Shown here piece by piece: positions 9,373 to 31,579 of a DNA stretch of 64,000 nt. Within the stretch, counting starts at the first letter, position 1. Each line of letters starts with the position of its first letter. Below the pieces are notes generated by a model. The model did not search any database. It saw nothing but the letters and a program-made list of their open reading frames with translations, and had not been told where the DNA came from. The stretch covers positions 6,423,102 through 6,487,101 of the forward strand of contig NW_002060944.1 in the NCBI RefSeq assembly GCF_000150275.1, read 5' to 3'. This DNA is from Trichoplax adhaerens. Its lineage: Eukaryota > Animalia > Placozoa. The translations under genes and the position numbers were made by a program.

Positions 9373-12300
9373 ATGGCTAAAATCAATGATAGTTTCTTAC
9401 TATGCCGTAATAATGCAGCGGAAGATTTTGTCGTTGGCATTGCTCAACATTCATCTCCCAATAGGATTATTGTCACCTATGCTAAAAAGGGAATCTATGT
9501 CTATGATGTAAGTCTCTATCTACTAAATGCTCATCATGCGATATTGTAGTCGTTGTATACTGTAGGGCATGCTTCTAATTTCAATTAACTTGGTAGCTAA
9601 TATTGGCATGTAGTAAACGAATCTGCAATCGATATCTCTTGCATAACTGAGATCAGTATGTTGATCTTATGACTGGCCTATCACATTGTTTGTCATTCAC
9701 ATTCGTTGTGGTACAGTTAACCCTAACACAATGCTGTACATATTCGATTGTAAGAGATATATGGTGTTGTTCTTCTAGTTTTACCAATCTTAGGATAGAT
9801 AGAAATTTCCATCAGTTAGATATAAAGTAAAAGGATATATTTTATTGTTAAAATCTTACTTGTAACACCATGGTAATGGATGAAATTGAACGTGATTATA
9901 TGTGCAATCTTGCTATAGTATGAAGAAAAAAGTGCCTACAAAAGTTGGTCCGTAGAGCAAAGATACCATGCAACAAATTATGCTATCCAAGTAGAAAGTA
10001 CCAACGATTATTACTGTGTCTTCAATGAAAAGGTTAGGCTGGGTATAGCTGTTATTATCAATATTATAATAAATTAATACTAACTCATGAGCACCAATGA
10101 GCAATAAGTATGGTTTGGAAGTAACACACTCTCAGTAAATGAAGGCTAAATGCTCCAACGAGATTATAAAATTATTGAACTACTATGGAAATTATAATTC
10201 AAACAATAACAGTAAAGACTTAACTGCTAGGATAGACCATCGTTACTAGATAATTAATTAATATTCAACGATGACATGTAGTCATAACCTACAATAGCAT
10301 CCGAAAGAATGACTTTATGTTGGCATTTTACATTTCAGGATATTTTCCAGTGGAGCGACCATTGCCCAACATTCGGTGAATTTTCTCACATTTCTGTAAG
10401 TACGCTTTAAAGTTAGATCTTGATAATATTAAGTATTCAAGTATCAAATTAGCTAGATATACCCTACGTACGGGCGTTAAATTTAATCGTTAAATTCGAA
10501 ATAAGTGATGATATTTCAATTTCATTAGTATTTACTTGGATTAAATAATACTGATTAATTAGCTTATCAGACAAATGTACTGCACGCGTATGTTAATGCC
10601 TATTGATTTGATGTCATGAAGAAATATGCTGAACTAATGCCATTGTTTCCTGCAATTGTATTCGCATGACTTATTAAAATATCTTTACGATACTCATAAT
10701 CATCAAACAACTTGTATAACGCAGGTTGAAAAGCCAGTCTATCGACTTCATGCACCAACAACTACACCCATTGTAACTTTAAACCAGCCAATTATAATCT
10801 CTACGGATGGAACTGTAGCTCTGATGTCATCTAGTAATTCCAATGGTACAATGCCCACAACCCGTAAGAGAGCTAAAAGAACAAAACCAAAGTGAGTTTA
10901 AAATTACCGTGTACATACAACGAACAAGAAATAGCTACGATGTTATAACCTATGTAGTACCAATAGATTAATTTTTGTTCAAAACTGTGAATTAAAGTGA
11001 TATACAGGTCGTTTGGAGTTCAATTTGGAGCCAAAAGAATAATTTTTTGTACGTAGGAATAATAACTTGTCGGGTAAGCAAACGATAGACTTTGAAAATT
11101 ATCCAATAAATATCTATGAAGAGATAATTTTAATGACATTTTTGTGCTAAACATTTTTATTGCCTAGGACGATGAATACTATCTTAATGTCAAAGAATTA
11201 CAAGATCAAAATCAGTCATTTGTCGATGTTCTGATGGCTAAATTATCAATCGACAAGCAGGTAATTTAGTTAACAACCTATAGCACAACTACTAATTGAT
11301 GATTTCGATTATGTGAACCTTTAGATCCAATAGTTTTCGTACAATGTATGTTAATGATGTAAAATTCTTTGTAACGTTTATACATGTACTCTAGTAGATA
11401 ATGCTAATCTTGTTCTATTCCAATCTTAGACCGATCTTCTAGCGATGGATTACAATTTTTCTCGAAATATCTTAGTCTCCCAATGTAAGAATTGAATTTT
11501 CATTAAAATTGCGATTTTTATAACTCTTTGTTTTGATCTCTGTTAAATTTCTTACTGACTCTTTATCATAGGGTCGGATAAATCATTACGCCAAAGTCCG
11601 AATATTACTAATCTATTACAAAGTAAAACTTCATTATCAGAGGAAGATAGCCGTATCAATTTACAAGTAGTACAATATAATTCCTTATCCGATGTTAAGA
11701 AAAGCCAATCTAAGGTAAATTTCTTGCATTGCTGGGTCTGTGTTGATATTAGTACAGTTATAAGATGCAATTGCTGTTGGTATAATTGTCTAGGTATCAT
11801 TAGCTTTACTTAACTCGCAATATGTTGTCAGTGCCGAGAAGAGCGTTGATGGTGATAACACAGGTATGTACCGGTTTAATTTGAACTGTGACAATACTGC
11901 AAATTTATCCAACCTATCGGATACTGACCATTATATAAATTTATAATTACAGAAGCAATACTGTCGTTATGGGATTTAACATTTGGAACTTTGCAATGCC
12001 GTCATAACTTATTGGAAAGTCTAAAGCTTGACGAAGATATTGCTCAATCTTCAGATAACACTTTACAAGTAAGTAATGAACGGCCTTTATGTAGCTTTCT
12101 ATCTTCACCTATCTGACTACCTTCAAGACACTCCTATACTTGCTTACTAAATACATTAATAACAAGTACTATTAATTTACAGCATGATTTTATATTTTTC
12201 TACGGTACTCCTTAACAATTACTCTTATTTGTTCTTATAGATTGTGAACATCTCTCCATATTTATTTATCGCTATTGATACCGCTGTGATTGTGTGTTAT

Positions 12301-15002
12301 TACGAATGTCAACCAGCTTCATTGTTGTCTGTTTTGGGTATGAAAATGCCTTCAACCAGGTTAGACTGAATTTAACGAAAGTTTATGTGACAAAGTTTGA
12401 AATCGTAGAAAATCGAATATTCTTTTGTAATGTAATAATACTGATTACGCATTAACAAATTGAATTACGGTAGTTCAAGTTTCATAAGGAAATACGACGT
12501 ATACTGACAGTACTATGGTTGTATTCTTTTAAATAATAGTGATAGCAACTCTGTATGTACAAATACCATTAATATATCGGATTGGAAGGGTCACGAGAAG
12601 GTATCAGTAGTTTTGATATTTACTACTACTACATGACTAATGATTAGTACTAGCTCTTAAAAGCTACTGTACTCAACTTCATAATGCTGTCTATTATAGG
12701 ATCAAAACTTACTACAAGCATGGAATAAGGCAGCTTCTTATTTATCAAATGAAAGTAACGTTAGTATCTATACAATAAGGCTCATAAATTTCTTAATTGC
12801 TTGAATTTAGTAGTTGAGAGAACAAAGTTATTGATTAAATCTGATACGATAAAGTAATTTAGGGTGAGATGTTAAATTTTATCTATATTCATCCTTGCTA
12901 TGCTGATAATATACACAGTATACGGCCGTGAAAAAATTCGAAAAAGCTGTTGATGAAGTCTTATCTGCTTTGAGTCCTGTAAAGGTAATCACGACCAGCA
13001 TAACCTAACAAGTCTAAAGTGTAGCTGTATAACATCATAAAATGTATGCGTAATATTTCTTTTTTTTCCGTGGATGAAGGGCTATGCCAAAGCTATGTAC
13101 TGCAACGCTTTATCTCAATTACTGCATCAGTGCATCGTTATGGAAAAGATTTGGCCAAGAAATGCTTTTATAAAACTTATTCGCGCGAATGGGATATCAT
13201 TTAGGTTATGATCCTATTAGTTTTCTCTGAATGGATTATTCTTCTGGTGCAAATGGATTGATTGTTATAAAGCCTAACCTTTATAATGCTGTTAAAAACT
13301 GATGCCATTTGTTAATTTTTAATTGTAGTGCTTGCCCATCACTCTTTCCGACTATATTCGAAAAAGATGATATGGTATTTGTGATACCCCACTCAATATC
13401 GGTGATTTTTATTAATTCCTCATTCAAATTTACTACTATTGTAATTGTAGGTTCTGTTTTTACTTGCTGTTAAAAAAATTCGCAACTTATCAGAAGCTGT
13501 TATCGTGAGAGGGATGAAATATATTCTGTTGTAAGTGCAGTGAATGTTACACCCTACCCAATAACCTTAAAAGAAAACTATTAACAATCCAGATTTTTAA
13601 AAATAAAATGCTCGTATATGTCATGATTCTATTATTCTTGCAAAATCGTGTCTTATTCTACATCATTTAGTCAAGTATCATCAATTATTTTATTTTTATT
13701 ATCGATGAGCCATGGACATGGTAATCTTTTCGTTACAGTTTAGGATAACGAACATTGTCGTAATATTATTGATTGCCGCTGTCTGGAAATTATTCCGTGT
13801 TACGGTTTCTTAATGTCTAAATATGATTATGATCACTTTCAGGGCAAGCGAATCAGTTATTACAGAAGCAGATAAAGAATTAAAGAAAAACGATGATTCT
13901 GAATTGAATGAAACATTAATTGAATTCAACGATATTCAAATCACAAAGCGAAAGGCTGAATACTTGTATCCTGTTATAAAAATTTTACTAACCCACCAAG
14001 GGTTGCTATATTTCTACGAAATATTAAAATAATGAGCGTGATAGTCCATTTTAATACCTTTCATATTTTCTGCACTCTAATTAAAAATATCTGAAATAGG
14101 GTTATTTTCTTAATATAAACAATCAGAAATTTGCTCTTGAGGCAGTTAAATAGTCATCTTTATTTTATGAATGAAGAATTGAGGACGTTCACTGTTCAAG
14201 AATGTTTGGTATGATACATTCTAATTCTGATTGATCTTAAATTATTATGGAGTGAATTGTTTCCTATATTTACTGAAGTTAAAATTTAATGTTTTTAATG
14301 GATGGCTTTATGAGTTGGAAAGCAAACTATAGAAAAATGACCGATATAAAATTAAACTTTATGTTGTCATTTTTCATTACAGGCTCTTGTACGATATTTA
14401 ATATACTTATTGAAGCTGTGTATAGATGACAAAAACCACCGAATGAAAGCTATCAAACAAACCTTGGTTAGAATTATCACATACTTACTTTACAGTCAAT
14501 GATAGTTACTAACGCAGAATGAGAAAATGTTTTGTTCTGTATTGTAACTTTATACATGCCAATAGATGTAGCTGATACTGCATAATCATAATATTTATTG
14601 ATCGTTTAACGTTTTGATTAAATTTTTATAATCCTAGGTTCTAGACTGGATAAATGCACTGTTGGATTCGCATTACATTCAGTTTACTTTATCAAAGGAT
14701 GCACATCAAGTTATTAAGGAATTATTTCAGCTTGTTCAAACGCAAGTAAGCCGGCTAAATTTGTTTTTGCCGAGATTCTAATGATACCATGTTACTGGTC
14801 TGCAAATTTTATCTTTTCTTATATCAAAGGAGAAGCTTCGATGTATACATTAAATTGATGAAATTTATTTTTGTTTCTGTAGATTCATATTTACGATAAA
14901 ATTCATCGCCTACGTGGGTTCTTAGAGTATTTTAGAGGTTCTTTTAGTTTATCCAAGCCAAAACAAATCCAAAATTATTCTATTGAAGTAATATCATTAT
15001 AA
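9373..15002 (+). CDS. NOL11: Nucleolar protein 11 (SSU processome t-UTP), many small exons
   Basis: N-terminus MAKINDSFLLC...VVGIAQHSSPNRIIVTYAKKGIYVYD; C-terminal VLDWINALLDSHYIQFTLSKDAHQVIKELFQLVQTQ and NYSIEVISL* match the NOL11 signature (IMDWICLLLDANF...YSIEVLEL). Confidence 0.85.
13966..14126 (+). other. U12-type (minor spliceosome) GT-AG intron in NOL11
   Basis: 5' site GTATCCTGT; branch-like TTTTCTTAAT at 14105-14114, ~12 nt before the AG; no polypyrimidine tract. Splicing joins KAEYL to NLLLRQ in frame. Confidence 0.75.
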
Positions 15003-24460: not shown

Positions 24461-26642
24461 ATGGCAGTGCTACATCGATATAGAACGATTTATATTTTAT
24501 TATCCTTTGTCATTGGCATATCGATTACTAATTGCACCCACAATTTACGTCAACATGATTCCCATCCCATGCAAAATTCACCGCTATATCCAGGTAACTC
24601 ATTGCTCTAGGATGCACCTTGATGGTGATAATTTCTTCTCATTTGTAAATTGAAGTGATTAGAGACTGAAACTTAATACTTATGCCTATCTTGATTAAAT
24701 CTTGTGTATGGAATAGTTTATCAGCATCTACTATACACTATATGTACATTGATAGGTTAGACTGTATCAAAATTTCTTATACGTATCATCTAATCTATTG
24801 CGTGTATATGTATTAATTTATTTGATAGATAAAAGAGACGATGGTTGTCATAAAGATGAGAATAAAAACTTAGCCTCTATCGATCGATCTGCAGCACTGG
24901 AAGGTTTTCATAGGTGCATTCATTTATAAAATAGCCTAGTCGTGTTAATTGTTATTCATTCAGAATAATGTTATGGAATGCTTTTGTGGTAATGTTATGT
25001 AATTTAGCTCGATACAGTATACCAAACGGTCATGAGTGCTTCAACTAACTGTAAATCAAAGTATACAGTATCATGTACATTAATAATAAGACGATATTGC
25101 CATCAATCTGAAAACTCGAATACTATAGTTGGAAAGCAACGAATCCAACAAAAATGTCGACACACTAATTTATAGAGTCAAGGATGAATAACAAATATTT
25201 AAAGTGTACTCTTAAAAGCTATCATAGCAATAACTTGCACTCTTAAACATATACCCTTACAATTACTGATCACCATCTACTACGTCCATAATAATCATTA
25301 TCATGTAGGGATTTAATAACCAAAATCAACTTTCGCTCCGAGGTTAAGTCAAATTTAACTTCATTTTCCGATCAATGCTCATTATTACTGGTAGAAAGGT
25401 TACCAACGGGTATTTATGTCGATTTAGACCAGGTTTTAATAGTATAAAATATCACTCTCATATAATTAATTGAAATTGAAAGAGAACCAACCTATTCTCT
25501 TCGCTATTTCTTAAAATTAGTTTATGCTCTTCATTTTATAGGTAGCAGAAATGGAAAGGCTACTTAAAGATATCTCGGTATATATTCAAATAAATATACC
25601 TATTATACACACAATTTTAATCCAAAATCATATTTCAGTCCGTAATTTAAATCTTAAGTAATTACTATTGCTACAGGTTATATCTTCTGACAGAATCGAT
25701 GTCGAAAAACCTGCTCATTTATCAACGGAGCATTTACTCCTGGTATATGCAAGAATAAACCCAATTACTGACGTAAGGTAAGTCGCGTCTTTTATTGCTG
25801 TTATCATTTTCCTTCCGTTTCCGTTAAATTTTTATCGTCATTCATTACTTAATTTGCTTCAAATAAAATGTAGTAGAAATACGCGTATTCGTGTCATAGA
25901 TGTAACTGATTTAAGTGACATGATTACATCGTTGTCATTAATTAAACAATACGACGTATAACCCCCTTGATGACAATAAATGATAAAAACGTTTTAACCG
26001 CAATTATAATTTTTAATCTTGTAATTTTGAACGGAAATACTTGCAATAGATCTACTAAGGTCTCACTTCCAATCCACCTACGTTATCACCTACCCCAGGA
26101 CGACTGGTATGGCTACACAGAAGTTGTTATGCCTCGTCCAATGTTAATACTTATCCATTGTGATAAAGGTTAGCAATTGCTTAAACTCCAATTTCCAGTA
26201 AATCGGCTGTTAACAACCAGACACTGCTAAATAACCTCTTGGTCAATTTATATATATTTAGAACTACCGGAATTCCAGTGTCAACCTAAATATACAGCTC
26301 CATGCAGCAATTCGAATAAGAGTTCTTGCGTTTGGAATCTCCTTTATGTGTGTATATACCCCTTATAACAAATATCTGCAGGCACTTAATTATTTACACT
26401 ATTGATTACTGAACCTTGTTTTTATGCACGAACTTCAGGATAATGAAAATGAAGATTCAGGCAATGAAATTATTCTTAAGGTACCTGTTGGAATTGTGAA
26501 GCATGGAGTTTTAGTCTCAATTGGAACGATTATTTCTGCAATTGCTGGAACAATTATTTTAATTATAGCTATAAAAAATGCATTCAGCGGAAAGGCAACG
26601 TACAAAGACAGGAATTACGTTTTAAAATCAAAAGTGCAGTAG
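24461..26642 (+). CDS. PIGX: GPI mannosyltransferase I subunit PIG-X/PBN1
   Basis: Signal peptide (MAVLHRYRTIYILLSFVIG); motifs EGFHR, CSLLLVERLPTGIYVD, IDVEKPA, LPIHLRYH, VPVG; C-terminal TM helix; GT-AG exons. Confidence 0.9.
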
Positions 26643-27201: not shown

Positions 27202-29053
27202 TTAAGTTTTCAACATTTTCGTTATTAATTGCTGACCATCTCCGTCAGCTTTTCGTTTGTTTACGTTTTCAAGAGGAATATTAAATTTAGTAGAAATTTC
27301 AGCTGCCCAGAGAGCTAGTTCAACTTTATGAGCGTTCCAGTTGTCTGATTCTTCTATAAAAGGTAACAAAGTGTTGTTGAATTCAGTGTGCAGCTTAGAG
27401 TATACCTGTCTGTAAAGCTACATGGATAGATGTATCTTCCTGTCACAAGTATAGTGTATGATTCCTAAGTTGACTAAAGTATCCACACTGGCGCAAACGT
27501 ATGCAATCGTTTTTAAACGCATACACGGATCTAAAGGAAGCGATACCTAACATTTATATTGTACCTATTTACGGAATGATATACTGCAGTAGTAATACCG
27601 CAATCACTAAGTAATAAAATCGATGAATATATAAAATTATCGGGATTCTCATTCCATAATATATATATATATATATAATATTTATCACTAACCCGCCTTA
27701 TTTAATTTTTTGGCACGATCAACTATCTTTTGTGTATACTTGTTAAAATATGATATATCGTATTTGATCATTCCAAGGCTAGCCACCCCAGCCATCGATT
27801 CATCAGCCATGAATGGAACGGATTCAGGACATGCAGCACATAAAATTGCTTACAAGTTTAAGTGGTAGTAACTTAATTAGACTATGGCATGAAATTATAT
27901 TTAAAGTAGGTGATCAACTTCGTTGTATATAATGATTTAAATTCTAAATTTCACTAGTGTAAATAGCTTGTATTACTGTTGTTGCTTACCGGATGCAGTC
28001 GCTGGGCCGACAGCTTTTAGTTCTGTAAGCTTATTGCAAGCAGCTAGTCTATCGGGTAATTTACTAAACGCTTCCTTCGAAATATCAATAACTTGTTTAT
28101 CTTCATTTTTCTTGATCATTTGACCTAATCCAGGTCTAAATTTACCTCGCTAAACATTACGAATAATAGCGTCAACTTATAACTTCGTATGCTACTATTT
28201 TCCTTGTTCCTTATAAAAATGTATTCTAAGTGACGGTGATAAGCAAAGTTGAGTTGACTAACCGAGAGTTTCCATTCCATTAATTTTACTAGCTCACTTT
28301 TTAGTATATGTTTCTCTTTCCTTTTATTGATAGCCTTAGGTAGTTGATTTTGATACCTGGTCATAGTAAAAGTACGCACACATACATAAAATGTATTTTT
28401 ATATCACGATAAAATATGATATGGAATATGAATGAATATACTGTGCAATTTGCAAATTTAATAATCACAACTTGTGCTGTAAATATAGTTATTATTGCAT
28501 TTTGCAACAAATAGCTGACGACTATTATAATTACATTTGACATGATACAGAATTCAGACTACAAAGTGCACTTTAAGATCACGATCCAAGATCACATCAC
28601 ATGGAATTTGTTACTGCATAATCGATAAAGATAAATGCAACAATCGACAAGCCGTACACATTTCAACGTGTGAACTACTAATGTCTACGCGAACTGGTAT
28701 TTACAGTTAATGGATGAAAATAAAGTACTACAGATACAAATGTTCAATAGCTTTATTTGCTGTATATATGAATTGTATATTAGTGCCTGTATAATGTGTT
28801 AAGATCGTTCGATTGCATTCAAAGGTACTCTTTCAGCTCAAATAAGCAGCCGAAAGTGTTTAGCGTTCATACAGCAGTTATCATATGCACACTAGCCATA
28901 TAGTCCTCCTTACCAGTTATCTAAAGCTACGACATCAGCCCTTGGTTTTCGATTTCCAGTAGCAGTAAATCTTGCTTTTAGAACATCCTCGTACCTAGAC
29001 AACGCTACTGTCCATTGAGTTAAATCGTCACTCTCGTAAAGTGCAGCAGCCAT
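27202..29053 (-). CDS. Amun-family (Drosophila Amun / zgc:112496-like) helix-hairpin-helix putative DNA glycosylase
   Basis: Five exons giving ...VVALDNWYQNQLP...ELVKLMEWKLSRGKFRPGL...LTELKAVGPATASAILCAACPESVPFMADE...WNAHKVELALWA...*; the HhH motif is LKAVGPATAS. Confidence 0.8.
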
Positions 29054-29275
29054 AATGATATGGACTAACTACTGTAATGACTGTCAGCAACAGGTATAAA
29101 CGTATAAACTATGTGCTAGAAAATAAAGAGCTAATGCTAGTAGTGCATCCAAAAAATCATCGAAATTACTAGCAGCAATCCAATCTAGACCTGATTCCAA
29201 TCCAATCAAAGCTATCAAAAAGATTACGGTCCAGAATCCTGACGTCCGATGACTATGAGCAAATTTCCCTTTACA

Positions 29276-29288
29276 TCTCCCGCCAAAA
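29276..29288 (-). promoter_or_regulatory. E2F-like site (TTTTGGCGGGAGA) in the Amun-like/NTHL1 divergent promoter
   Basis: Matches the E2F consensus TTTSGCGS; a TGACGTC CRE-like site lies nearby (~29240). Confidence 0.4.
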
Positions 29289-29554
29289 TATGCGCGTGCT
29301 CATTTCGTCTATCAGGTTGTCAATAAAGGAAGAAACAATTTTTCCTTCTTAATTCTATTATGAAAAGTCAGTAAAACTCTTTGACCGTAGAGTGAATATA
29401 CGTCATTACAAGCTATACTGGGTTAGGTAAGTTAGCATTCTATGATTCAATCTCGTCCATTAAATTGCCAGTTCGTCCATCTCCTAAAGCCAGGGAAAAT
29501 CCATACTGTGCAGTGTGCACTATGCTGAGATATTCCTTTGCCTGCACGATGCAT

Positions 29555-29655
29555 ACAGTGTACAGTACAATACTGTACTGTACTGTACTGTACTGATAGA
29601 CTAGACATTGACTCGATGTTACAGTACAGTACATACTGTTACTGTGCACTGTACA
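29555..29655. repeat. TACAG/CTGTA pentamer array in divergent promoter
   Basis: cagtgtacagtacaatactgtactgtactgtactgtactg...tacagtacagtacatactg. Confidence 0.85.
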
Positions 29656-29817
29656 CGTGCATGCTAATGTTTATTTACAGTTGGGCCCAAATGTAGAAAA
29701 GCAGAGCTGCAACTGTTACAAACTCAAGCAGTAAATAGATTACTGTCTAACCTTTAGTATCTTATAATTTAATTTCCACCGACTACAGTAGTGCCGATGC
29801 ACGTGCAATGAAAGCTT

Positions 29818-31579
29818 ATGTTATTTGTGCCGACAAATTTCTTTTGCACATTGCCAAGGTTAAGTCGACTGATTTGGAATATGGCAGAAAGCGCATCTCT
29901 TCATGCTCGACCTGAGCTGCACAATGCAAGAGCAGGTCGAAGAAAACACCTCGATATTCAGTATGAAAATGATCCCATCAAAAAAGTTAAAGGTCCAAGT
30001 CCTATTGCTAGAAAAAAACGTGTCGAGAAGGTACAAAAGCAACATGTTGATAAGGGTGAAAAGCCCTCTTGGGAGCCAAAAAACTGGCATTTACAACTGC
30101 AAAATATAAGAGAAATGCGAAAAGCTAAGGACGCTCCTGTAGATACGATGGGCTGCTCTGAATTATCGGATAGATCCGAATCTGTAGAGGTACGAGTATA
30201 TACTCGTCTACGCGTATGCAATCTTTAATTTTTTCATGCTGTACTTGAGGAGTTTCTGATACTGAGCTAGCCTGAAATGATGAACTATGGATTACTGTAC
30301 TGCAAAGAAACCTAGTAGTCTATGGTATTGCCTAAATGATACCAGATGCTTACTTTGGAGCAATTCGCGTATAAAAATTTTACTTTTGCATAGCTAATTT
30401 TCAGTATACAACTACCTTACTTTTGATGGCATGGCAAATCACTCAATAGTAAATTTTAAATTCTGTATGTAATATTTACGACGCACTCTTGTCCTGCAAT
30501 CATTAAACACTGAAAGCAGACTGCATGTCCGAATTGTGTATTGCAAACTTACGTATACGCGTATGATCAACATCTCTCAATAATTTCTTGTATCGGATAT
30601 TCTGGAATTCACTGTACTGTATAGGTGCAAAGATACCAGATCTTAATCTCCTTAATGCTATCCAGCCAAACTAAAGACCAAATCACTGCAGCAGCCATGC
30701 ATAGGCTCAAAAATCATGGTTTAACCATGGATAATGTTATGGCTACCTCGGACAAACAATTGGGAGAATTAATTTTCCCAGTCGGATTTTGGCAAGTAAT
30801 ACTCACATGCAATAATTTTAGTATCAGTAATTGTTGAGGTAGTTAGCTTAAGGTACCGGACCTGATGCATTTAAACTTATCTAATTAATACTCGGCAACA
30901 GAAATTTTATCAGTCTTTAAGTGTTGTACCTTATTGCTTATCCATTCTTATGTATTGTATTATTATTCATCAGAGAAAAGTACAATATATTAAAAGGACT
31001 ACAGCAATGTTAATCGAAAAGTACAACAAGGATATCCCACCGACGCTGGATGAATTGAAGGCACTGCCTGGGATCGGACCTAAAATGGCTCATTTAATAA
31101 TGCTTTCAGCATGGAATTCGGTTGTCGGTATTGGTGTGGATACACATGTCCATCGTATCTCCAATCGCCTAAAGTGGGTAAAGAAACCGACTACTGACCC
31201 AGAGAAAACAAGAATAGCTTTAGAAGAATGGTTACCGAGGTATGATAGATTTGTAGCTGACGTCAGCATAACCTAAAGGAATTGGGATTGAATCAATTTT
31301 ATTCGATTCGATCCAAGCTTACTAAGTACATTGTAATATACTGTAGTAAAGATAAATGTACTTTATCAGTATGCTGTACAATACTGAATCGGCTTTAAAT
31401 AAAACTACTTGATAACTCAATGGGATTACCAGTATGATCTTCCTGTTTTTAGAAATGAGTGGAGAGAAATAAATTGCTTAATGGTTGGGTTTGGTCAAAC
31501 TATATGTCTGCCTATTAATCCATTATGCGATAATTGCCTTAACAAGCCTATCTGCCCGTACGGCAAAAGAGGAAGATAG
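29818..31579 (+). CDS. NTHL1: Endonuclease III-like DNA glycosylase/AP lyase
   Basis: Exons 29818 (or 29881)-30189, 30625-30795, 30974-31239, 31453-31579. Motifs [17 protein letters not shown], Hh[21 protein letters not shown], and the 4Fe-4S motif C-x6-C-x2-C-x5-C. Confidence 0.96.

Follow-up and report, generated by a model that had tools for sequence, protein, structure and literature searches.

Base excision repair in eukaryotes is generally ascribed to a short list of well-known glycosylases. For the protein Amun, a putative glycosylase domain has been on record since 2009 (Shalaby et al., 2009; PMC2728848), as credited in a later preprint through which this work is cited here, so that the glycosylase idea, also put forward in a sequence-only reading of the present locus, is not new. 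Drosophila Amun is known genetically as a transcriptional/Notch modifier, and a repair enzyme need not be one. Neither an enzymatic substrate nor a base-release assay for Amun-family proteins was found in the literature searched, and the same reading had likewise named no demonstrated substrate. In the window, i.e., the whole stretch of 64,000 nucleotides of Trichoplax DNA analysed here, the family is represented by a gene on the - strand, and NTHL1 is its divergent neighbour. The locus adds a good gene model to a family whose putative glycosylase domain was already described. That family appears to be a concrete candidate for an additional glycosylase, given the invariant Asp at the predicted catalytic position and a confident Ogg2-like structural model.

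Both genes were found where the sequence-only reading had placed them, and their models were confirmed by open reading frames, splice sites and homologues (Table 1). NTHL1, on the + strand, consists of 4 exons that bear the Lys, the Asp and the 4Fe-4S Cys motif. Pfam HhH-GPD and HHH were matched above cut-off across its exons 2 and 3, and exon 3, which reads GIGPK...GIGVD with 19 residues from Lys to Asp, was aligned gaplessly to the human NTHL1 structure 7rdt (E 1e-33). The Amun-like gene is composed of 5 exons with 699 nt of coding sequence (233 codons); every intron is of the GT-AG type, all five exons are tiled contiguously by homologues, and the gene is single-copy in the 105.6-Mb genome searched. 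Exon 2 shows 48-61% identity to orthologs (tblastn) and likewise stands as an exon of its own at six other loci. Exon 3 terminates in GPATAS, the following Ala codon being split by the intron. Exon 5 begins at 27353, because the acceptor at this position (ttttatag) is the sole one in phase with the phase-1 donor at 27693, and the homologues agree. A start at 27417, offered by a long open frame, was rejected, since no acceptor there fits this donor. The GP-A-...-D string that had been read from the spliced gene proved correct: Ala occupies the position of the NTHL1 Lys and Asp stands 19 residues further on, followed by Glu (Asp147 and Glu148 in the protein's own numbering). The 4Fe-4S Cys cluster is absent from the Amun-like protein, and exon 5 is free of any Cys.

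Table 1. Exons of the Amun-like gene and of NTHL1 and the region that separates them (positions in the window).
Feature	Positions	Strand	Content and support
Amun-like exon 1	29053-28914	-	start codon 29053; 46 codons + 2 nt; ORF and GT donor; homologues cover 29053-28913
Amun-like exon 2	28356-28263	-	conserved LP..I..R and MEWKL; AG/GT sites
Amun-like exon 3	28149-27990	-	RGKFRP motif; helix-hairpin LKAVGPATAS 28020-27991; Ala at Lys position 28002-28000
Amun-like exon 4	27848-27693	-	PFMADE; invariant Asp 27804-27802, Glu 27801-27799
Amun-like exon 5	27353-27205, stop 27204-27202	-	WNAHKVELALW motif and basic tail
Divergent intergenic region	29054-29880	.	827 bp; single E2F-like site 29280-29287
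NTHL1 exon 1	29881-30189	+	basic N-terminal extension; ORF and splice sites
NTHL1 exon 2	30625-30795	+	first half of HhH-GPD; Pfam PF00730 27 bits vs cut-off 26.2
NTHL1 exon 3	30974-31239	+	HhH; Lys 31082-31084, Asp 31139-31141; Pfam HHH 39.4 bits, HhH-GPD 33 bits
NTHL1 exon 4	31453-31576, stop 31577-31579	+	4Fe-4S C-x6-C-x2-C-x5-C at 31505-31555; from translation

The - strand gene is a single-copy ortholog of the eukaryote-wide Amun / zgc:112496 family, where the link to Amun rests on the NCBI names of tick orthologs and on the UniRef name 'CG2446', names that are themselves similarity-based. Exon 3 alone retrieved 118 database matches, and the coral ortholog retrieved 297 relatives whose names include zgc:112496, CG2446 and protein amun, which bears out the Amun-like identity suggested earlier; the Atlas clusters agree with it. 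An Atlas search with exon 3 of the Trichoplax gene returned weak leads only. The family is spread over animals (with fishes, reptiles and marsupials among the named matches), a liverwort and early fungi, and members in Gemmatimonadota and Chloroflexota bacteria were found in the present analysis. Likeness to the Amun (CG2446) / zgc:112496 family extends over the full length, with 40-60% identity per exon and, between orthologs from animals, E values as low as 1e-60, and the Trichoplax copy has an equal core length, all family-invariant residues and intron positions common across phyla. The arthropod members P0061 and P0107 possess long acidic low-complexity C-termini, whereas the tail of the Trichoplax copy is short and basic.

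Conservation was counted over 83 full-length members, column by column, with the exons of the Trichoplax gene entered as separate alignment rows. The Asp, whose conservation in orthologs had been set as a test by the sequence-only reading, is present in 83/83, the following Glu in 82/83 and the Ala at the Lys position in 83/83. Equally invariant (83/83 each) are the G, P, A and T of the GPAT hairpin as well as G79, R82, P83, L85 and Y159, all of them retained in the Trichoplax gene; the W..H.VE..LW motif of exon 5 is conserved across the family and the alignment contains no conserved Cys column. The bacterial homologues, which are 189-203 residues long, keep GPATAS together with a D-E or D-D pair. 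Across 36 bacterial loci of such homologues no neighbour is conserved beyond close relatives, and ten neighbours that were scanned are mutually unrelated (among them ChaN, a glyoxalase-like protein, DUF188, DUF892, MgsA/RarA and an HTH protein), so that the bacterial gene context gives no functional hint.

Pfam, NCBIfam and PDB sequence searches with the Amun-like gene, exon by exon, gave nothing useful; PF00730 (HhH-GPD) was not matched by any of its exons, by 20 eukaryotic members or by 10 bacterial members, and no Pfam or NCBIfam glycosylase model rose above its cut-off on any family member scanned. The Ogg2 model NF002305 had no match in 20 family members or in the whole genome, and the family profile found nothing significant among PDB sequences. 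Below threshold, the members matched HHH, PF21790 (OGG-like), DUF6308 and mutY, with the Pfam HHH found in 17/20 members (best E 5e-5, mostly under cut-off) and mutY in 6/20. With hhalign, the family profile was aligned to NTHL1 exon 3 without gaps (E 3e-5), Ala falling on Lys and Asp on Asp, and it was aligned with identical equivalences to three Ogg2-like bacterial proteins (E 2e-4), both alignments having moderate probabilities (73% and 49%) and the second set consisting of three sub-threshold Chloroflexota proteins in place of canonical Ogg2. In the latter alignment the VE..LW of the Amun family falls on the DL..W helix. By these two profile alignments the invariant Asp is the predicted equivalent of the catalytic Asp and the Ala that of the Schiff-base Lys.

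The structural check that had been proposed for this protein, namely prediction followed by Foldseek, returned an HhH-GPD glycosylase fold. The structure was predicted with AlphaFold2 for the coral ortholog P0040, in place of the Trichoplax protein, with pLDDT 91.7 and pTM 0.85. Nearly all Foldseek matches of this model are HhH-GPD glycosylases, other chains ranking 33rd or lower with probability <=0.12. When these matches were aligned with VIA-align, the best was MjOgg (3knt; Z 10.5, 162 aligned residues, rmsd 3.8), next came 3fhf (Z 9.9), Tm1821 (Z 9.7) and SsOgg (Z 9.4), and MagIII, EndoIII, MutY and OGG1 reached Z of about 7. A Foldseek-independent search over 48,161 chains placed the HhH-GPD glycosylase fold in all of the top 20, with unrelated chains from Z 5.1. 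The model shows the two-lobed all-helical glycosylase fold, with best Z of 9.7-10.5 against PDB representatives, and for an all-helical model a Z of about 10 lies within the range in which the tool warns of a merely common arrangement. The unbroken run of a single superfamily in the predicted model's matches argues against a chance resemblance of this kind. In the model the hairpin helix spans 126-136 and is followed by a loop of 8 residues, after which the Asp opens helix 145-149; this layout is the topology of EndoIII and MutY. Judged from the predicted structure, the Amun family belongs to the HhH-GPD superfamily and amounts to a compact core about 200 residues long, and among solved structures it is nearest to the Ogg2-type 8-oxoguanine glycosylases. 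The structural lists also hold QNG1/DUF2419 (7ulc, 7ugk, 7u07; Z 5.4-6.5) and phage PUGT (8z2m, Z 5.3). QNG1/DUF2419 is a queuosine-5'-monophosphate hydrolase, and the same fold also serves a nucleotide hydrolase and, in phage PUGT, a DNA-base transferase.

The relation to the Ogg2 type (MjOgg 3knt/3fhf, SsOgg 3fhg, Tm1821 3n0u; NF002305), which gave the best structural match to the P0040 model, is structural with a weak profile component. The match spans both proteins almost whole (model 7-203 vs chain 3-204), and both consist of two lobes of equally minimal size; the Asp of the Amun family is aligned with the catalytic Asp, and an acidic-x-x-x-Trp motif is shared in the last helix. Identity, however, is only 11-17%, the Ogg2 enzymes carry the Schiff-base Lys where the Amun family has its invariant Ala, and no Ogg model matches the Amun family, of which both the D-E pair and the RGKFRP loop are specific traits. 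The monofunctional HhH-GPD enzymes MutY, MagIII, AlkA and Mag1 share with it the fold (Z 6-7.5) and an Asp unaccompanied by the hairpin Lys, and the MutY hairpin resembles its GVGPxT; unlike MutY, the Amun family has neither an Fe-S cluster nor the MutY C-terminal domain, and none of the family models scores above its cut-off. NTHL1 and endonuclease III belong to the same superfamily, with a gapless profile alignment and an equal spacing of 19 residues from hairpin to Asp, but in the Amun-like protein both the Lys and the 4Fe-4S Cys motif are missing, and PF00730 has no match there.

From sequence and model together, we consider it somewhat probable that the Amun-like protein is an Ogg2-like, monofunctional DNA N-glycosylase of the HhH-GPD superfamily; DNA as its substrate, catalysis and monofunctionality are what we infer here. 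In such an enzyme the LKxVGPATAS hairpin would grip the DNA backbone, and a damaged or modified base would flip out and be received between the two helical lobes, in a pocket whose family-invariant lining is made up of the RGKFRP loop, a Tyr and, at the C-terminus, the W..H.VE..LW helix. Hydrolysis of the N-glycosidic bond would then be promoted by the invariant Asp, located at the N-terminus of the helix that follows the post-hairpin loop, with the aid of the adjacent Glu. An enzyme in which Ala consistently replaces the Schiff-base Lys would be monofunctional, and the abasic site would be passed to an AP endonuclease. More tentatively, and with somewhat less confidence than for the single protein, the whole Amun / zgc:112496 family might be a clade of Ogg2-related monofunctional DNA glycosylases that extends from Gemmatimonadota and Chloroflexota to fungi, plants and most animals, with a lesion specificity of its own that the D-E pair and the invariant RGKFRP loop would determine. 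If true, eukaryotic base excision repair would gain an enzyme new to it in the Amun family, and the nuclear phenotypes of Amun would be explained. The residues to mutate are now defined (Asp147 and Glu148 in Trichoplax numbering, together with the RGKFRP loop), and the small bacterial homologues should express easily.

One may ask whether the fold is used for catalysis at all. It could have been kept as a module that binds DNA or reads lesions and modifications, the protein being a non-catalytic regulator of transcription or chromatin in the nucleus, which we hold to be unlikely. A precedent would be S. pombe Mag2 (4b21-4b23, Z 6.6-7.0), one of the structural matches, which binds to abasic sites although as an HhH-GPD homologue it is catalytically inactive; yet Mag2 presumably has no catalytic Asp, whereas the Asp-Glu pair of the Amun family is conserved from bacteria to vertebrates at the frequencies given above. 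Most family members terminate in a basic, NLS-like tail, as would suit a nuclear regulator, but the bacterial members have no regulatory tail, and a dozen strictly invariant pocket and loop residues are more typical of an enzyme. Later papers present Amun as a regulator of transcription in the nucleus that modifies the Notch pathway, and as a chromatin protein that co-immunoprecipitates with Rad50, and these descriptions speak for the non-catalytic role.

Slightly less likely still, in our estimation, is an enzyme that shares this fold but has another substrate or chemistry, be it a free nucleoside or nucleotide hydrolase (QNG1-like), an RNA-acting enzyme or a DNA base-modifying transferase (PUGT-like). 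QNG1 and PUGT do occur in the structural lists, but DNA glycosylases score clearly higher, with Ogg2 at Z 9.4-10.5. The sequence of the Amun-like protein reveals no lesion specificity and the bacterial gene neighbourhoods are mostly unrelated to repair, as could be expected of such an enzyme; LKGVGPATAS, however, is a canonical DNA-backbone-binding HhH, recognized by Pfam HHH in most members scanned, and the profile alignments match NTHL1 and Ogg2-like proteins. A DNA glycosylase is the reading retained here.

What made the locus look special was its adjacency to NTHL1, from which the sequence-only reading had derived a co-regulated base-excision branch. The two start codons lie head-to-head, 827 bp apart, and of the shared promoter of less than 1 kb with an E2F-like site that had been proposed, the short gap and a single E2F-like site, TTTGGCGG at 29280-29287, were found; the site is 227 bp from the Amun-like start and 594 bp from that of NTHL1. 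The motif itself is statistically unremarkable, since the TTTSSCGS pattern occurs 2 times in the window vs 5.4 expected, i.e., with no enrichment. Recurrence of the adjacency had been proposed as a check, and it was not observed: NTHL1 was absent within 10 kb of the Amun-family ortholog in all seven other animals examined (Nematostella, Corticium, Branchiostoma belcheri, Strongylocentrotus purpuratus, Crassostrea virginica, Dendronephthya and one further animal contig), therefore the adjacency tells little about a common pathway and the locus adds little beyond its gene model. That the two genes form a co-regulated module, with an E2F-responsive bidirectional promoter serving one replication-linked base-excision branch, is very unlikely, as their close divergent starts, one E2F-like site and common superfamily fold are set against an unremarkable motif, no NTHL1 exon beside the orthologs, a vertebrate NTHL1 whose head-to-head partner is TSC2 instead, and PIG-X, rather than NTHL1, as the neighbour kept in common with a sponge, on the opposite side of the Amun-like gene. 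The head-to-head arrangement is best read as a lineage-specific feature of a compact genome, not as evidence for a common pathway. Positions 29554-29653 of the intergenic region are taken up by an inverted repeat of (TACTG)n.

The Amun-like protein encoded head-to-head with NTHL1 is best read as a putative monofunctional N-glycosylase acting on DNA. The window is AT-rich (G+C about 33%) and contains spliced genes; the complete Amun-like model comprises five exons of together 699 nt, i.e., 233 codons (see table), and a tblastn comparison of the window with homologous proteins tiled all five, the query coordinates being contiguous. A long 3′ open frame from 27417 was rejected as exon 5, since it is incompatible with the phase-1 donor of exon 4. 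Intron 3 interrupts the Ala codon following GPATAS and, read across it, the string GP-A-TASAILCAACPESVPFMA-D given by the sequence-only reading is correct. So is its NTHL1 string, with 19 residues from the hairpin Lys (the Schiff-base residue) to the Asp; exon 3 of NTHL1 aligns without gaps to the solved human chain 7rdt (E 1e-33). In the Amun-like protein the Asp likewise lies 19 residues past the Ala that occupies the Lys position, and the Cys cluster of a 4Fe-4S motif is absent from the spliced model, as had been claimed. The gene is single-copy in the 105.63-Mb assembly (1414 contigs). Exon matches revealed identical exon boundaries in cnidarian, sponge, amphioxus, sea urchin and another animal locus (L002-L006), and in the first four of these loci, exons 2-5 were matched as whole, separate exons; therefore the intron positions, including that of the intron splitting the codon right after GPATAS, appear from sequence to predate the divergence of these phyla. 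A closer relative, a 1.9-kb contig of placozoan-like source, shows 78-87% identity per exon.

Positions of the features in the window
Feature	Position	Strand	Basis or remark
PIG-X gene	25967-26642	+	Pfam PF08320 on two exons
Amun-like exon 5	27353-27205; stop 27204-27202	-	acceptor ttttatag 27354-27361, joinable to phase-1 donor 27693
Amun-like exon 4	27848-27693	-	GT-AG sites; phase-1 donor at 27693
Amun-like Asp	27804-27802	-	
Amun-like exon 3	28149-27990	-	GT-AG sites
Amun-like Ala in Lys position	28002-28000	-	
Amun-like exon 2	28356-28263	-	GT-AG sites
Amun-like exon 1	29053-28914	-	GT-AG sites; start codon at 29053
E2F-like site	29280-29287		227 bp from Amun-like start codon, 594 bp from that of NTHL1
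Inverted repeat, 34 nt	29554-29653		(TACTG)n/(CAGTA)n runs, arms 82% complementary, 32-nt gap
NTHL1 exon 1	29881-30189	+	splice sites read from sequence
NTHL1 exon 2	30625-30795	+	splice sites; Pfam HhH-GPD/HHH above cut-offs
NTHL1 exon 3	30974-31239	+	splice sites; Pfam HhH-GPD/HHH above cut-offs
NTHL1 hairpin Lys	31082-31084	+	
NTHL1 Asp	31139-31141	+	
NTHL1 exon 4	31453-31576; stop 31577-31579	+	carries C-x6-C-x2-C-x5-C

Single Amun-like exons served as queries, and none matched an entry in Pfam, NCBIfam or PDB; exon 3 as sole query retrieved 118 proteins from a library of 1.84 billion, the full-length ones of about 230-290 residues, matched at about residues 75-130. The coral ortholog P0040 retrieved 297 relatives. 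Among the matches listed, fish and shark entries carry the label 'uncharacterized protein zgc:112496' and one snake entry 'CG2446', and those of cnidarians, sponges, echinoderms, hemichordates, amphioxus, molluscs, annelids, amphibians, reptiles and marsupials are nameless; cluster look-ups gave 'protein amun' or 'uncharacterized protein Amun' for ticks, one liverwort and two fungi of the Mucoromycota, names that bear out the designation Amun-like. Marsupials, crocodilians, turtles, lizards, snakes, amphibians and many fishes are represented among the best 120 of the 297 relatives, and placental mammals and birds are not, which no more than hints at lineage loss. The uncharacterised family is already catalogued under several names; the proposal of a glycosylase domain in Amun is traced by citation to 2009, and no paper reporting a substrate was found in the literature searched, in line with the earlier statement. 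New here are a correction of the gene model, the assignment of an Ogg2-like fold from a confident model, the observation that Asp, Glu and Ala are strictly invariant, the homologues in bacteria and the finding that NTHL1 adjacency is not conserved. Among 83 full-length members (P0040 numbering), G125, P126, A127, T128, D145, G79, R82, P83, L85 and Y159 are invariant (83/83), so that the Asp is conserved in orthologs, and E146, W74 and K75 are each present in 82/83; the hairpin position is never Lys, and the Trichoplax gene retains every one of these conserved residues.

The AlphaFold2 model of P0040, built from an 88-row alignment in which the five Trichoplax exons were entered as separate rows, is all-helical and confident (pLDDT 91.7, pTM 0.85). 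The Foldseek matches in PDB are nearly all HhH-GPD glycosylases, with E-values that are weak, and a few other chains appear at rank 33 or lower. VIA-align on these matches gave MjOgg 3knt (Z 10.5, 162 aligned, rmsd 3.8), 3fhf (9.9), Tm1821 (9.7) and SsOgg (9.4), followed by MagIII, EndoIII, MutY, OGG1 and Mag2 (6.5-7.5) and QNG1/DUF2419 (6.5), where Z under about 13 may reflect a common arrangement among helical proteins. In a search independent of Foldseek, the top 20 of 48,161 representatives all have this fold and the first unrelated chain has Z 5.1. The modelled assignment of an Ogg2-like HhH-GPD glycosylase fold is convincing because the run of one superfamily is unbroken and its matches span model residues 7-210 and nearly whole targets. 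By hhalign, the family profile aligns to NTHL1 exon 3 over 42 gapless columns, Ala on Lys and Asp on Asp (E 3e-5, probability 73%), and the same equivalences recur against three Chloroflexota Ogg2-like proteins (E 2e-4, probability 49%), to whose invariant DL..W the C-terminal VE..LW of the family aligns. In the model, the second hairpin helix (126-136) is followed by an 8-residue loop, and the Asp opens helix 145-149, which is where Asp138 lies in EndoIII. That the Amun-family Asp is the catalytic HhH-GPD Asp is supported but not proven by profile and model.

Scanning bacterial and archaeal genomes for a pattern turned up 36 loci, most of them in Gemmatimonadota and others in Chloroflexota, Rhodothermales and one Steroidobacteraceae MAG. 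These homologues (L008-L043; 189-203 residues) are 27-42% identical across almost the entire core, match the eukaryote-built family profile with E-values from 1e-42 to 1e-54, occur once per genome, and give sub-threshold matches only to PF21790 (OGG-like) and DUF6308. They retain LKGVGPATAS and the acidic D-E pair (D-D once), with the pair one residue nearer the hairpin, as in EndoIII and MutY. Most of them end in a conserved GGKxG directly after the ALW helix. No conserved gene neighbourhood was found around these loci; MgsA/RarA, a replication-associated ATPase, is the divergent neighbour in two Chloroflexota loci (L008 and L025). Two contigs labelled bacterial MAGs (L044, L045) show 53-56% identity, a level well beyond that of the remaining bacterial loci, with matches spread over longer DNA; they are probably of eukaryotic origin and were misassigned to bacterial bins.

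In the proposed mechanism the hairpin would bind the DNA backbone, the base would be flipped into the conserved pocket and the Asp would assist hydrolysis; a lyase step would be absent because the Lys is absent. A non-catalytic regulator remains a rival reading: Drosophila Amun is described as a nuclear transcriptional/Notch regulator containing a glycosylase domain, it co-immunoprecipitates with Rad50, and Mag2 provides a precedent. An enzyme of QNG1-like or PUGT-like type, with another substrate or chemistry, also remains in contention, as such enzymes turn up in structural comparisons of the P0040 model.

The view that the putative glycosylase gene and NTHL1 form a co-regulated module remains as well. 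Of the claimed shared promoter of less than 1 kb, the distance (827 bp from start codon to start codon) and the E2F-like site stand, yet the pattern occurs only twice in the window vs 5.4 expected. A 34-nt inverted repeat also lies between the two genes. The NTHL1 adjacency is not conserved: no NTHL1 was found within 10 kb either side of the ortholog, by gene calls and tblastn with NTHL1 exons, in Nematostella (L002), the sponge Corticium (L003), Branchiostoma belcheri (L004), Strongylocentrotus purpuratus (L005) and an animal contig (L006), or, by gene calls alone, in Crassostrea virginica (L051) and Dendronephthya (L052). Unlike the NTHL1 side, the pair with PIG-X, tail-to-tail with the Amun-like gene in the window, looks like ancient microsynteny. 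The same convergent pair is present in Corticium candelabrum (PIG-X at L003 11476-13173, - strand; Trichoplax exon match E 2e-5). Within 10 kb of the ortholog, eIF-3 zeta (EIF3D) is found in Nematostella (L002 1-4743) and Crassostrea virginica (L051 16687-21854). In sea urchin, gene calls place the ortholog (L005 850-9977, - strand) head-to-head with a SIR2-family gene (10001-13927, + strand) 24 bp apart, which is another lineage-specific divergent partner.
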